A stretch of DNA of 37,865 nt from Ministeria vibrans ATCC 50519. Its lineage: Eukaryota > Protista > Filasterea. Below the pieces are notes generated by a model. It was not told the origin of the DNA. It saw only the letters and a list, made by a program, of their open reading frames with translations, and made no database searches. A program made the translations under genes and the position numbers. Shown here piece after piece: positions 1,279 to 8,005 of the stretch (position 1 is the stretch's first letter; each line of letters begins with the position of its first letter). The stretch lies in the NCBI GenBank assembly GCA_943704425.1, contig CALSCP010000317.1:1-37865 (forward strand), in the 5' to 3' direction.

Positions 1279-4664
<3,386 letters not shown>

Positions 4665-4755
4665 AGAGAAAGCACATATGAAAAAAAACTTATGCGTTAT
4701 GACTACAGTATATTGAGAAAGAGAGAAAGAGAGAGAGAGAGGGAGGGAGGGAGAT

Positions 4756-5943
4756 TCAGAAGAGCACTGAGGCAAGGTCGCTGCCCGGGGGCACGCCGGC
4801 CTGCTGCATGGCGACAGCCACGCGCACCACCCGCCGCTTCTCTGCCTTGCGTGTGAATGGGAGGCCATCCGAGTCGAGCAACGTGCCTCCGAGACGCCCT
4901 TGCACGGCCTCACTGAGCTCACTGAGTCGCTCAAGAACGCGCCCTGGTGCATGGAAACCCGCTGTGTACAACTGAAACTCAATGGTACGCACACAGGGCG
5001 TGTCGCTGTCAGCCCACAAGGGATGTGTCCACGGCGGACTCGTCACAACCGTAATGCACGGCTCCAACGACCCATCGGGGTACTTGGCCATGTGGGCGTA
5101 GGAGTAGGGCATCTCGCTGGTCGTCGTCGCCGCCGCCGCCTTCTTCTTCTTCCCTTCCTCCTCCTCCTCCTCCTCCTCTTCCTCCTCGTCGTCGTCGAGT
5201 TGTGGCTCCAGTCCAAGCTCGTCAAACACAGCAAACACCGAAGAGACTGAGTAGGGTGCCTCACCGGCACTCGTCAGGGACACACACACGGTCTCGTCAA
5301 AGTGCTGCATCACTTCGTTGGCCGCCTCAGCACGCTGCACGGCATCCGGAATGAGTCCGTGCGACACGGAGCAGTTTTGGAATCCCTTGCGCACCGCGAC
5401 CACGATCTGTTCAAGCTCGTCCACCGACAGAATATCGCCGTACACGTCGTAGGGCGACACGGGTCGATTGGAGTCGCGCACAAGAGCGACGTAGATCTGC
5501 GCGCGATCCAAAACGGGGTCCTCGTCAATATCCTCGCCCACATCGTCCCAGTCCTCTTCGCTTGCGTCCCCTTCGTCGCAGTCGTCTCCGTTGGCGTCGT
5601 TGGCGCGGTCGTGGCTGTGGTCCTTGCCCTCGCAGTCGGTGGCTTCCGCGTCGCGTGCGTTGGCCGCTCTGCTCTCGTTGTACGCGTGAAAGACTTGCCA
5701 CTCGTCGTCGTCGTCGCCATCAATGTGCCCCAACACAAGGTAGGTCGTGCCACGAAGAACAGCCAGTGCGGCGGCCAGGACTTCGCTCATGGGTCGATTG
5801 AGGCCGATCACATCAATGGCGAACTCCACGGCGCTCTGTCCCGGCGGATTGGGCGGCGGAAACGACACCTCCAGCGGCTTGATCGCCGTTTTCTTGCTTC
5901 GTTTCGCAGCAGGCTCAACAAGGCGGGGCACTAACTCATCCAT
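4756..5943 (-). CDS. Intronless 395-aa protein resembling bacterial ZipA C-terminal FtsZ-binding-domain proteins
   Basis: Single clean ATG-to-TGA ORF filling the space between SGK3 and TFB1M. The C-terminus (RVLERLSELSEAVQGRLGGTLLDSDGLPFT...AMQQAGVPPGSDLASVLF) fits the ZipA_C pattern as I recall it: LGG.L.D....P.T, and the betaproteobacterial-type tail M...G..PG...A..LF. Confidence 0.75.
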   Translation of the reverse strand: MDELVPRLVEPAAKRSKKTAIKPLEVSFPPPNPPGQSAVEFAIDVIGLNRPMSEVLAAALAVLRGTTYLVLGHIDGDDDDEWQVFHAYNESRAANARDAEATDCEGKDHSHDRANDANGDDCDEGDASEEDWDDVGEDIDEDPVLDRAQIYVALVRDSNRPVSPYDVYGDILSVDELEQIVVAVRKGFQNCSVSHGLIPDAVQRAEAANEVMQHFDETVCVSLTSAGEAPYSVSSVFAVFDELGLEPQLDDDEEEEEEEEEEEGKKKKAAAATTTSEMPYSYAHMAKYPDGSLEPCITVVTSPPWTHPLWADSDTPCVRTIEFQLYTAGFHAPGRVLERLSELSEAVQGRLGGTLLDSDGLPFTRKAEKRRVVRVAVAMQQAGVPPGSDLASVLF

Positions 5944-6034
5944 TGATAAAAAGAGTATAATTTTATTAATTTATGACTTATGTTGCAATCGCCAATGACC
6001 AATCAGTTTTTCTTTAAATTCCTACGACACTTCG
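5944..6034. promoter_or_regulatory. 91-bp AT-rich divergent promoter with tandem CCAAT boxes (5992-5996, 5999-6003)
   Basis: Lies between head-to-head ATGs; GACCAATCAG matches the NF-Y consensus RRCCAATSR. Confidence 0.5.
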
Positions 6035-6884
6035 ATGTATCGCTGGTTTCCGAACCTAGCAAAAGCATCACAGGCGAGTGGCACGCGGGCGTGTTGGCGC
6101 GGCTTCAAGCGCGGCCTACCGCCCATGCCAAGCACAAGCGATCTTCTGCGCGTGTACGGACTCAAAGCGAAGCAGCAGCTCAGCCAGAACTTCATCTTGG
6201 ACCTACGTGTCACCGACCGTCTTGTCGCTGCCCTCGGCGACGTGTCGGACTGTGCCGTCATCGAAGTCGGACCCGGTAAGCCTGCAAGAAGGCTCCCCAA
6301 GCACTCGATGAACTTGACGCGTCTCGGCAGGCCCAGGCTCGCTCACCCGCTCCATCATCGCCGCAAACCCTCGGGAAATCGCCGTGGTGGAGAAGGACAC
6401 TCGATTCCTGCCCGCTTTAGAAGTATTCGCCGCGCGCGTGCCGTCCGATGCGCTGCTGACCGCTTCTTCTCGTAGCTGCTCAAGGATGCGTGTGCGTGTC
6501 CGCTCAAAATCGTCGCAGGAGACGTCCTCAACGTCGATCTTGCCGACTTGGTCAATGCAGACGATGCAGTGCCCTGGGACTCAGGTGAGAGACGTCGAAC
6601 GGGACACAAAGCACCCTCACTTTGTGGTTGTTAACTCATCTCTCTCTCCCTCCGAAGACGAGCCTGCCCGAGCCGCAATCATTGGCAATCTACCCTACTC
6701 CATTTCAACACCTCTTCTCATCAAACTTGTCCGCGATGTTGCATCTCAGTACGACACATCTTCTTGAGAGTGTCAATCAACCATGAAATACGCTGTTTAG
6801 AACGGGTGCGTTTCGGTTGGGACGTGTGAAAATGCTGTTGACCTTTCAACATGAAGTCGCAGAGGTACAAAAGGAGAGAGAGAG

Positions 6885-6976
<92 letters not shown>

Positions 6977-8005
6977 AGTGATAGAGAGAGAGATGGGAGA
7001 AACAAAGTGATAGAGAGGGAGAGGAGAAAGAAACAAAGTGGTAGAGAGAGATAGGGAGAAAGAAACAACGTGATAGAGAGAAAGGAGGGAGAAAGAACAT
7101 AGTGATAGAGAGAGGAGGAGGAAAAAGAAACATAGTGATAGAGAGAAAGGAGGGAGAAAGAAACAAAGTGATAGAGAGGAAGAAGAGGAAGGAGGAGCAA
7201 AATGATAGCGAAAGAGAGAGAAGCAAGTAATTGGGAGAGAAGCAAGTAATTGGGAGAGAAGCAAGTAATTGGGAGAGAAGCAAGTAATTGGGAGAGAAGC
7301 AAGTAATTGCAAGTAGAGAGAAACACAGTGATAGAAAGAAAGTGATAGAGAGCGAGAGACACATTGGTTACCCTCGACACACAATGCACCTTACTCCTTT
7401 GTTCTAGCGCATTCGCGCACCCATAAACTGCGCTGACCGCGGACGACTGAGTCCAATAGTTCAGAACTACTTTCATGTGCGTAAGGCCGCCCGACTGCCT
7501 CCACAGGTGTTTGTGCCTCCTCCCAAAGTGCTCTCTCAAGTAAACACATGCACCGCGAGTGAGTGTGTATGTGACAGACGCACCCTCTCTTTTTCAGGCA
7601 GTGCTGTTTGAGCCTCGCTTAGTGCCTCTCTATGGCGGACGTGACACTACCAAACTAGATATGTTTGAAAAGGTTTTGCGCGCAGGTTTTCGTTCGCGTC
7701 GCAAGTACATTGTCAATAACCTCGCGTAAGTCACACACAAACAAAAAAAAAAAAAAGAAAAGAAAAAGAGAACAGACATGCTAAAGAGAATTCTAATGCT
7801 TACTCACTCACTCACCGACGCTGTCTCCAGTGGCTTATGGGGCACCGGGCGCGAGAACGCGGGTCGCATGGACTTGGCGCGTGCGGTGTGTGCTGAGGCG
7901 GATGTGTTGTTGACTTCGCGTGCAGAAACCCTCTCGGTTGTGCAGTGGGGGCGACTGACCGATGCCTATCTTGAACAGCACTCGTGCAGCACCCATCCTT
8001 CTTAG
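6035..8005 (+). CDS. TFB1M: Mitochondrial rRNA dimethyladenosine transferase / transcription factor B1 (KsgA/Dim1 family), ~343 aa, 8 exons (6035-6275, 6331-6422, 6476-6584, 6658-6748, 6801-6864, 7408-7539, 7598-7725, 7831-8005)
   Basis: LPPMPS..DLLRVYGLKAKQQLSQNFILD, VIEVGPGPGSLTRSI, VVEKDTRFLPALE, IIGNLPYSISTPL, LTFQHEVAER, FVPPPKV. Basic presequence-like N-terminus. Confidence 0.93.
6873..7360 (+). repeat. Compound repeat in TFB1M intron 5: (GAAA)n, (GA)n, GAAACAAAGTGATAGAGAG minisatellite copies, and a 19-bp tandem GGGAGAGAAGCAAGTAATT x5 (about 7216-7309)
   Basis: Directly visible periodicity. Confidence 0.9.

Follow-up and report, generated by a model that had tools for sequence, protein, structure and literature searches.

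A transcribed ZipA_C-type gene of probable bacterial origin in the filasterean Ministeria vibrans

INTRODUCTION

In the searchable literature, the ZipA C-terminal fold (ZipA_C) is known only from bacteria, and its one studied member tethers FtsZ to the membrane. A sheet-and-helix face of this domain binds a short peptide in Escherichia coli ZipA. The E. coli residues that contact the C-terminal peptide of FtsZ are M226, I228, M248, V249, K250, F269 and R305, and the substitution F269S abolishes both binding and function (PMC8669495).

The subject of this study is an open reading frame (ORF) of 395 amino acids from Ministeria vibrans ATCC 50519, a filasterean whose genome was assembled from culture metagenomes containing bacteria (PMC9492541). 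The contig, CALSCP010000317.1 of assembly GCA_943704425.1, was analysed over positions 1–37,865, and this whole stretch of 37,865 nucleotides is called the window. The ORF lies on the minus strand at 4756–5943, where it begins with ATG and runs in one uninterrupted frame. A sequence-only reading of the window had proposed that it is a resident, bacterium-derived gene akin to the long ZipA proteins of Neisseria and other betaproteobacteria. We find that it is probably a genuine, transcribed nuclear gene derived from a bacterium, whose product would now be a soluble docking module with a ZipA_C-type fold, and that its kin are bacterial proteins of another kind than those proposed.

RESULTS

A bacterial family links the ORF to the ZipA C-terminal domain

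Four matches to the ORF protein, with E values from 3e-4 to 8e-4, came from an exhaustive phmmer search covering 1.84 billion representative proteins. The four alignments start at query residues 300–338 and reach the last residue of both proteins, and each of the four matched proteins scores above the Pfam cut-off for ZipA_C (33–71 bits). A pattern scan of GTDB genomes yielded 41 further bacterial loci of the same family, and ZipA_C is matched by 41/41 bacterial relatives in the alignment used here (A3). A family profile was made from 41 bacterial proteins with the query left out. It scores 59.2 bits on the ORF protein (E 2e-20 for a single target), in two colinear pieces, with profile positions 143–242 on residues 144–246 and positions 276–363 on residues 308–395. 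In the controls, no score exceeded 2.8 bits for 1000 shuffles plus the reversed sequence, or 2.9 bits for the remaining 356 open frames of the window. These results support the ORF protein as a homologue of the ZipA C-terminal fold, and the colinear similarity blocks of the sequence-only reading are thus real, extending from about residue 144 to the last residue.

The same link is not made by direct searches. Pfam gave no ZipA_C match to the ORF even at an E value of 10 (the gathering score is 23 bits), none of the ZipA models of NCBIfam was matched, TIGR02205 included, and a sequence search of the PDB gave no ZipA match; what these searches otherwise returned was low-complexity noise. Exact-sequence look-ups found no record of the protein, and the ESM Atlas gave no usable match. 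A word-indexed homologue search gave nothing with the single sequence and was swamped by poly-Glu words when the alignment was supplied, and a six-frame search of the genome with PF04354 was likewise without a match. The link to ZipA_C therefore runs through the bacterial family: of the profile and structural match to ZipA_C that was looked for, the direct Pfam match is absent, and the match through intermediate sequences, together with the match in fold, is present. As a separate observation, residues 174–378 (4810–5424) scored 19 bits (E 6e-4) on the NCBIfam model of a siphovirus major capsid protein, whose cut-off is 75 bits; this match is taken as chance.

The match in fold comes from a predicted structure. 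AlphaFold with alignment A3 gave predicted local distance difference test scores (pLDDT) of 82–97 at residues 170–250 and 310–395; the single-sequence model, with a pLDDT of 40, was unusable. In a Foldseek search of the PDB with the former model, the first 10 matches were all chains of the E. coli ZipA C-domain, with probability 1.0 and target template-modelling (TM) scores of 0.67–0.76. VIA-align against representative structures placed 1f47_B first, with Z 12.8 and a root-mean-square deviation of 3.7 over 140 of 144 residues, the next chain having Z 6.2.

An uncharacterized bacterial family of ZipA_C proteins

Judged by sequence, the kin of the ORF form a separate, uncharacterized bacterial ZipA_C family of about 360–380 amino acids, exemplified by P0002, P0004, L003, L011 and L041. 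In the GTDB scan its members came from Planctomycetota, Verrucomicrobiota, Bacteroidota, Myxococcota, Acidobacteriota and a few Pseudomonadota, with a broken copy in Paenibacillus. In these proteins the C-terminal half consists of a ZipA_C-type domain and, behind it, a helical tail with the ending PGS..LF. Their scores on TIGR02205, the ZipA equivalog model, are 39–52 bits against a cut-off of 119.65. Nothing on this family was found among the searchable papers on ZipA in eukaryotes or Planctomycetes, and PADLOC assigned no defence family to the ORF or its relatives. Gene neighbourhood was considered as a clue to function and dropped, none being conserved among the bacterial loci.

FtsZ was not matched in three member-bearing genomes of Planctomycetota (L024, L018 and L006), and a family member and FtsZ are both present in one Verrucomicrobium and one Foetidibacter genome. 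Because members occur in FtsZ-less Planctomycetota, the domain must have some role that is independent of FtsZ.

The N-termini of the bacterial members (L002–L042) are of three kinds, with example loci at L003:4977-6107, L004:4887-5978 and L028:4983-6014. Some carry lipoprotein-type signals (LSAC, LISC, VVGC), others have ZipA-like transmembrane anchors followed by basic residues (Lys/Arg), and about 10 are without any hydrophobic segment. With such a mixture, the side of the membrane on which the domain lies would vary between species. It also means that the lack of an anchor in the ORF protein is not a eukaryotic novelty, since about 10 bacterial members lack one too.

Like its bacterial relatives, the ORF protein has the ZipA_C-type domain and then the helical tail, and its colinear match to the family profile, at 59–68 bits, starts at residue 144 and runs through to the C terminus; the ORF protein differs from them in having only 22–27% identity over about 220 residues. 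The near-invariant motifs of the family are GL.WGDMD.FHW, TS..PGYF.PE and RLGG. The ORF keeps RLGG, GL, both Asp residues, the His and the Thr..Pro pair, and has other residues in place of the W, G, M, F, G-Y-F and E, so that WGDMD and PGYF.PE are degenerate. Further differences are a 29-residue low-complexity insertion, 143 N-terminal residues that are acidic and either unrelated or unrecognizable, and the eukaryotic host.

Layout of the protein

The features of the ORF and of the spacers on either side of it are as follows.

4756–5943, minus strand: whole ORF, 395 codons plus a stop codon at 4756–4758; intronless and single-copy, with RNA contigs colinear with the genome
5515–5943, minus strand: N-terminal region, residues 1–143; no hydrophobic anchor, KRSKK at residues 14–18, pLDDT below 50
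5588–5589, minus strand: 9-nucleotide in-frame length polymorphism, with one more Asn-Asp-Ala (NDA) unit in three of four runs
5299–5514, minus strand: pre-domain region, residues 144–215; strand, helix, strand, helix, aligned to profile positions 143–215, with pLDDT 82–88 at residues 170–215
4876–5298, minus strand: ZipA_C-type domain, residues 216–356, as matched by Foldseek, VIA-align (1f47_B, Z 12.8) and the family profile
5101–5187, minus strand: low-complexity insertion, residues 253–281 (poly-Glu, Lys4, Ala4, Thr3 and neighbouring residues), in the loop where the family has WGDMD
4759–4875, minus strand: C-terminal helical tail, residues 357–395, ending in PGSD..LF; the part best conserved relative to the bacterial family, and absent from E. 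coli ZipA
4665–4755, no strand: 91 bp separating the stop codon of the kinase gene from that of the ORF, the two genes being convergent; RNA contigs from both sides overlap here
5944–6034, no strand: 91 bp separating the start codon of the ORF from that of the RrnaAD-like gene, the two genes being divergent; bridged by a DNA contig (X2) at 5206–6613

No significant homology was found for residues 1–143, the family profile match beginning at residue 144. A hydropathy scan gave neither an N-terminal transmembrane anchor nor a signal peptide: within the first 110 residues the 15-residue Kyte-Doolittle mean peaks at 1.55, and a lipobox is absent. An acidic low-complexity stretch occupies about residues 95–143. 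MAFFT pairs W82 and W132 with Trp columns in the N-terminal part of the family, which may be chance. The KRSKK at residues 14–18 could possibly direct the protein to the nucleus.

The pre-domain region at residues 144–215 is, by its alignment, homologous to the matching part of the bacterial family. Conservation is highest towards the C terminus, with 43% identity to P0002 over 63 residues in the tail part, and this alignment stops at the last residue of both proteins. When residues 253–281 are skipped, the two profile matches merge into one piece (profile positions 143–363) that scores 67.7 bits, up from 59.2. This makes the low-complexity run a loop insertion in an otherwise complete domain, and bears out the poly-D/E/K/A insertions of the sequence-only reading as an acidic, Lys- and Ala-containing run inside the domain.

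Physical integration, transcription and variation

We aligned the contigs of four sequencing runs to the window. Two of these runs (X8 and X16) are RNA, since their contigs splice out six GT..AG introns in the kinase gene next to the ORF. In the DNA data, a contig from an algal metagenome (X6) spans 4033–5112 and one from a 2022 run (X2) extends over 5206–6613, each with 0–1 mismatches; both junctions of the ORF are therefore bridged outside the source assembly, and the gene's residence in the chromosome, already favoured over contamination in the sequence-only reading, is supported.

In RNA run X8, one contig joins spliced kinase exons to 4547–5112 and another covers 5206–5935; the depth of exons and ORF is 230–306, versus 2.4 for a piece of unspliced intron. 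The kinase contig of RNA run X16 (depth 46) ends at 4705, and the ORF is covered there by contigs at 4693–4854, 5206–5677 and 5749–5913 (depth 10–21). Contigs colinear with the genome on 4547–5112 and 5206–5935 show no RNA joint inside the ORF. Every run, DNA contigs included, breaks at 5113–5205, which is a GAG/GCG repeat. An intron was considered for this insertion-bearing segment and rejected, because its coding strand contains no GT; no RNA joint was seen either. The ORF is thus physically part of a eukaryotic chromosome and is transcribed, being covered in unspliced form by two RNA runs whose contigs do not give the strand of the RNA.

The ratio of kinase to ORF depth differs by run (46:10 in X16 versus 306:230 in X8), which suggests that the kinase gene and the ORF are transcribed separately, their transcripts converging on the 91-bp spacer and overlapping there. 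The kinase and ORF RNA contigs overlap by at least 13 nucleotides (4693–4705), so that the 3′ ends of the two genes overlap or abut within 4665–4755.

Variation across the runs consists of one synonymous single-nucleotide polymorphism (SNP) at 5263 and the 9-nucleotide in-frame indel. The extra NDA unit occurs in the metagenome run and in both RNA runs, and is absent from the reference and the 2022 DNA run; at least two alleles or strains are therefore in circulation.

The stretch was found in sequencing runs from ten studies, algal and seawater metagenomes among them. Near-identical copies in runs X8–X11, X15 and X17–X20 carry five other organism names or come from algal and seawater metagenomes, and marine cultures seem often to contain this protist, as a companion or a contaminant.

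The locus and its neighbours

The ORF is present in one copy in the genome of 29.7 Mb and 2860 contigs. The stop codon of the left neighbour ends at 4664 and that of the ORF starts at 4756, leaving 91 bp, and the gap between the ORF's ATG at 5943 and the right neighbour's ATG at 6035 is also 91 bp. There is no N within 4500–6200. The description of an intronless 395-codon frame set 91 bp from each neighbour, with gapless junctions, is therefore accurate. The spacer at 5944–6034 is presumably a promoter region common to the ORF and the right neighbour.

The neighbours had been named as SGK3, a kinase, and TFB1M. The left one contains a Pkinase domain (64 bits), from which the RNA contigs remove the six GT..AG introns. 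In the right one, two exons match RrnaAD weakly and colinearly (profile positions 2–41 and 100–121), which is consistent with a gene of TFB1M/Dim1 type (rRNA adenine dimethylase family). The kinase assignment thus holds at the level of the domain, and TFB1M is borne out only to the extent of these weak colinear matches. The G+C content at third codon positions (GC3) is 0.73 in the ORF versus 0.56–0.70 in long host frames. An intron of the right neighbour contains, at 6900–7330, an AG-rich minisatellite with summed contig depths of up to 400,000 and dozens of false joints; it is a very abundant dispersed repeat of the genome.

Comparison with canonical and betaproteobacterial ZipA

The C-domain of E. 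coli ZipA (PDB 1F46/1F47; PF04354; TIGR02205) and the ORF protein share a predicted fold (Z 12.8, TM 0.67–0.76), but there is no direct sequence match between them. The ORF protein also lacks the N-terminal transmembrane anchor and the P/Q linker of E. coli ZipA, does not keep the FtsZ-contact residues, possesses an extra C-terminal tail and resides in a host genome without FtsZ. By these features it is not a canonical ZipA in the sense of the TIGR02205 equivalog.

A specific kinship with the long ZipA proteins of Neisseria and betaproteobacteria also fails. The family profile scores 59 bits on the ORF, 31 on E. coli ZipA and 12 on a beta-type ZipA (L049), and a BLASTP search with the ORF matched only family members, neither E. 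coli nor beta-type ZipA. The beta-type protein (L049:54-1172) does resemble the ORF in its ending (..AGSPLARRLFS and ..PPGSDLASVLF, respectively) and in a layout colinear with that of the family. This shared ending and layout is what the sequence-only reading had recognized as beta-type ZipA. One Ramlibacter metagenome-assembled genome (MAG) carries a family member and, separately, the beta-type ZipA, and the two are therefore paralogous lineages. The C-terminal tail is common to beta-type ZipA (L049), the family and the protist protein, with E. coli ZipA lacking it, and may be an old, functionally important element.

The contacts made with FtsZ in E. coli can be followed in the profile alignment. 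M226 is the sole contact residue kept by the family; in the ORF, the placement of the insertion decides whether its equivalent is Asp or Tyr. The equivalent of F269 is G, S, V or A in the family and Q324 in the ORF, and that of R305 is G in both (G360 in the ORF); at M248/V249 the family has S/T-T and the ORF has T/S. In the host genome FtsZ_C had no match, and the sole match to TIGR00065 is a tubulin, in agreement with the earlier statement that opisthokonts lack FtsZ. FtsZ is thus an unlikely partner, given a host without FtsZ, contact residues that are not kept and bacterial members in FtsZ-less genomes, and the substitutions in the ORF indicate that its protein probably no longer binds FtsZ. 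An algal host with a plastid FtsZ as the partner was considered and ruled out, the genome having no light-harvesting genes and no FtsZ; no chlorophyll-binding proteins were found in it.

Origin and distribution

No eukaryotic relative was found among the 1.84 billion representative proteins, the Atlas clusters of the relatives are 100% bacterial, and a scan of JGI metagenome contigs with residues 282–395 gave no relative. With all detectable relatives bacterial, among proteins and Atlas clusters alike, the bacterial origin proposed earlier stands, and we infer a transfer from a bacterium to the host as the only reading that fits the distribution.

The ORF sits on a branch of 5.9–7.6 substitutions per site in domain-only and full-length trees. 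In the domain-only tree, it stands beside a small Myxococcota-type group (P0001, a Deltaproteobacteria MAG and a Haliangiales MAG), with a Shimodaira–Hasegawa-like approximate likelihood ratio test (SH-aLRT) value of 74 and a branch of 5.9 substitutions; in the full-length tree, which is a quick tree, it is unplaced. These trees point to no particular bacterial donor. Either the transfer is an old one, or the gene changed fast after it.

Like other genes transferred from bacteria to protists, the ORF is intronless and of bacterial ancestry, lies between intron-bearing host genes, has a composition near that of the host and contains host-like low-complexity insertions. It differs from them in its ZipA_C fold, which is unreported from eukaryotes in the searchable literature.

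DISCUSSION

We consider it likely that the ORF is a genuine transcribed nuclear gene, derived from a bacterium, and that its product now serves as a soluble docking module with a ZipA_C-type fold. The probable course of events is that the gene was acquired from a bacterium and that the eukaryotic copy kept the homologous region from residue 144 to the end. This copy, without a membrane anchor or lipoprotein signal, would have gained the acidic N-terminal stretch, and would carry in addition the 29-residue Glu/Lys/Ala/Thr insertion in a loop of the domain. To judge from the modelled fold, the sheet-and-helix face could hold a short motif of a protein other than FtsZ, and a soluble peptide-docking module is our best guess for the role of the protein.

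Several points weigh against this interpretation. The ORF itself falls below Pfam ZipA_C and every ZipA model of NCBIfam. The structural model is not independent evidence, because its fold is inherited from an alignment made of ZipA_C proteins, and it shows consistency only. The contigs give neither the strand of the RNA nor its true 5′ end, the furthest one stopping at 5935, 8 nucleotides before the ATG. No eukaryotic orthologue was found with which selection on the ORF could be measured, and the degenerate WGDMD and PGYF.PE motifs, taken with the very long branch, would be compatible with relaxed selection as well. The gene neighbourhoods of the bacterial members are not conserved.

Some of these points are shared by the main rival explanation, in which the ORF is a transcribed relic: a bacterial transfer that is passively expressed in a compact neighbourhood and drifts without a selected function. 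The very long branch (5.9–7.6 substitutions per site), the loss of motifs invariant in the family, the low-complexity insertion within the domain and the lack of both paralogues and eukaryotic orthologues are all as expected of such a relic, and passive transcription is plausible where the spacers are only 91 bp. We nevertheless think this explanation unlikely. A 395-codon frame would close without selection (a rough estimate is about 3% stop codons per codon at this composition), and the survival of the intact frame over some 6 substitutions per site argues that its translation is under selection. In addition, the C-terminal 60–90 residues keep 33–43% identity to bacterial members, the sole SNP is synonymous and the indel is in frame, and the RNA depth of the ORF is comparable to that of the neighbouring kinase in one run.

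The other explanations are less probable again. The sequence-only reading had favoured a retained binder of FtsZ tails, directed against prey or symbiont bacteria or re-aimed at the tails of tubulin. The ZipA_C fold is kept, as is the conserved RLGG hairpin region, and the host appears to be a marine heterotroph, from its lack of light-harvesting genes and its occurrence in seawater and algal metagenomes; however, the case is weak, and we think it improbable, with F269 replaced by Q324, R305 by G and M248/V249 by T/S among the published contacts (PMC8669495), with the bacterial family present where FtsZ is absent, and with no signal peptide by which the protein would reach a phagosome or prey bacteria. 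Very little credence can be given to an assembly chimera, or to bacterial contamination joined to eukaryotic contigs: such an artefact would agree with an intronless ORF whose GC3 of 0.73 is slightly above the 0.56–0.70 of the host, and with assembly from bacteria-containing culture metagenomes (PMC9492541), but the junctions are bridged with 0–1 mismatches by independent DNA contigs from different studies, an RNA contig links spliced kinase exons with the 3′ end of the ORF, and the stretch recurs in runs from 10 studies and is free of N. An ancient eukaryotic family passed on by vertical inheritance seems equally improbable. We found no point in favour of it, and it is opposed by the absence of eukaryotic relatives in the 1.84 billion representative proteins, by Atlas clusters that are 100% bacterial and an empty JGI metagenome scan, and by the nesting, weakly, of the ORF inside bacterial sequences.

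Tubulin is the eukaryotic homologue of FtsZ. It is conceivable, though with only a small chance of being correct, that a ZipA-type docking domain has been reused in a eukaryote without FtsZ to hold the acidic C-terminal tails of tubulin, another host motif, or the FtsZ tails of ingested or associated bacteria. If true, it would be the first time that this fold of the bacterial divisome is seen in use by a eukaryote, and a partner, if found, would show the re-use of a part of the bacterial divisome. As it stands, the ORF is one more well-documented transfer from bacteria to a protist.

Finally, we note that this unicellular relative of animals, which lacks FtsZ, expresses a gene with the ZipA_C fold, and that a broad, unstudied bacterial family carries the fold in FtsZ-less lineages such as Planctomycetota. 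Because the family carries it in such lineages, we suggest that the ZipA_C domain serves in peptide docking more generally than one would gather from its name.

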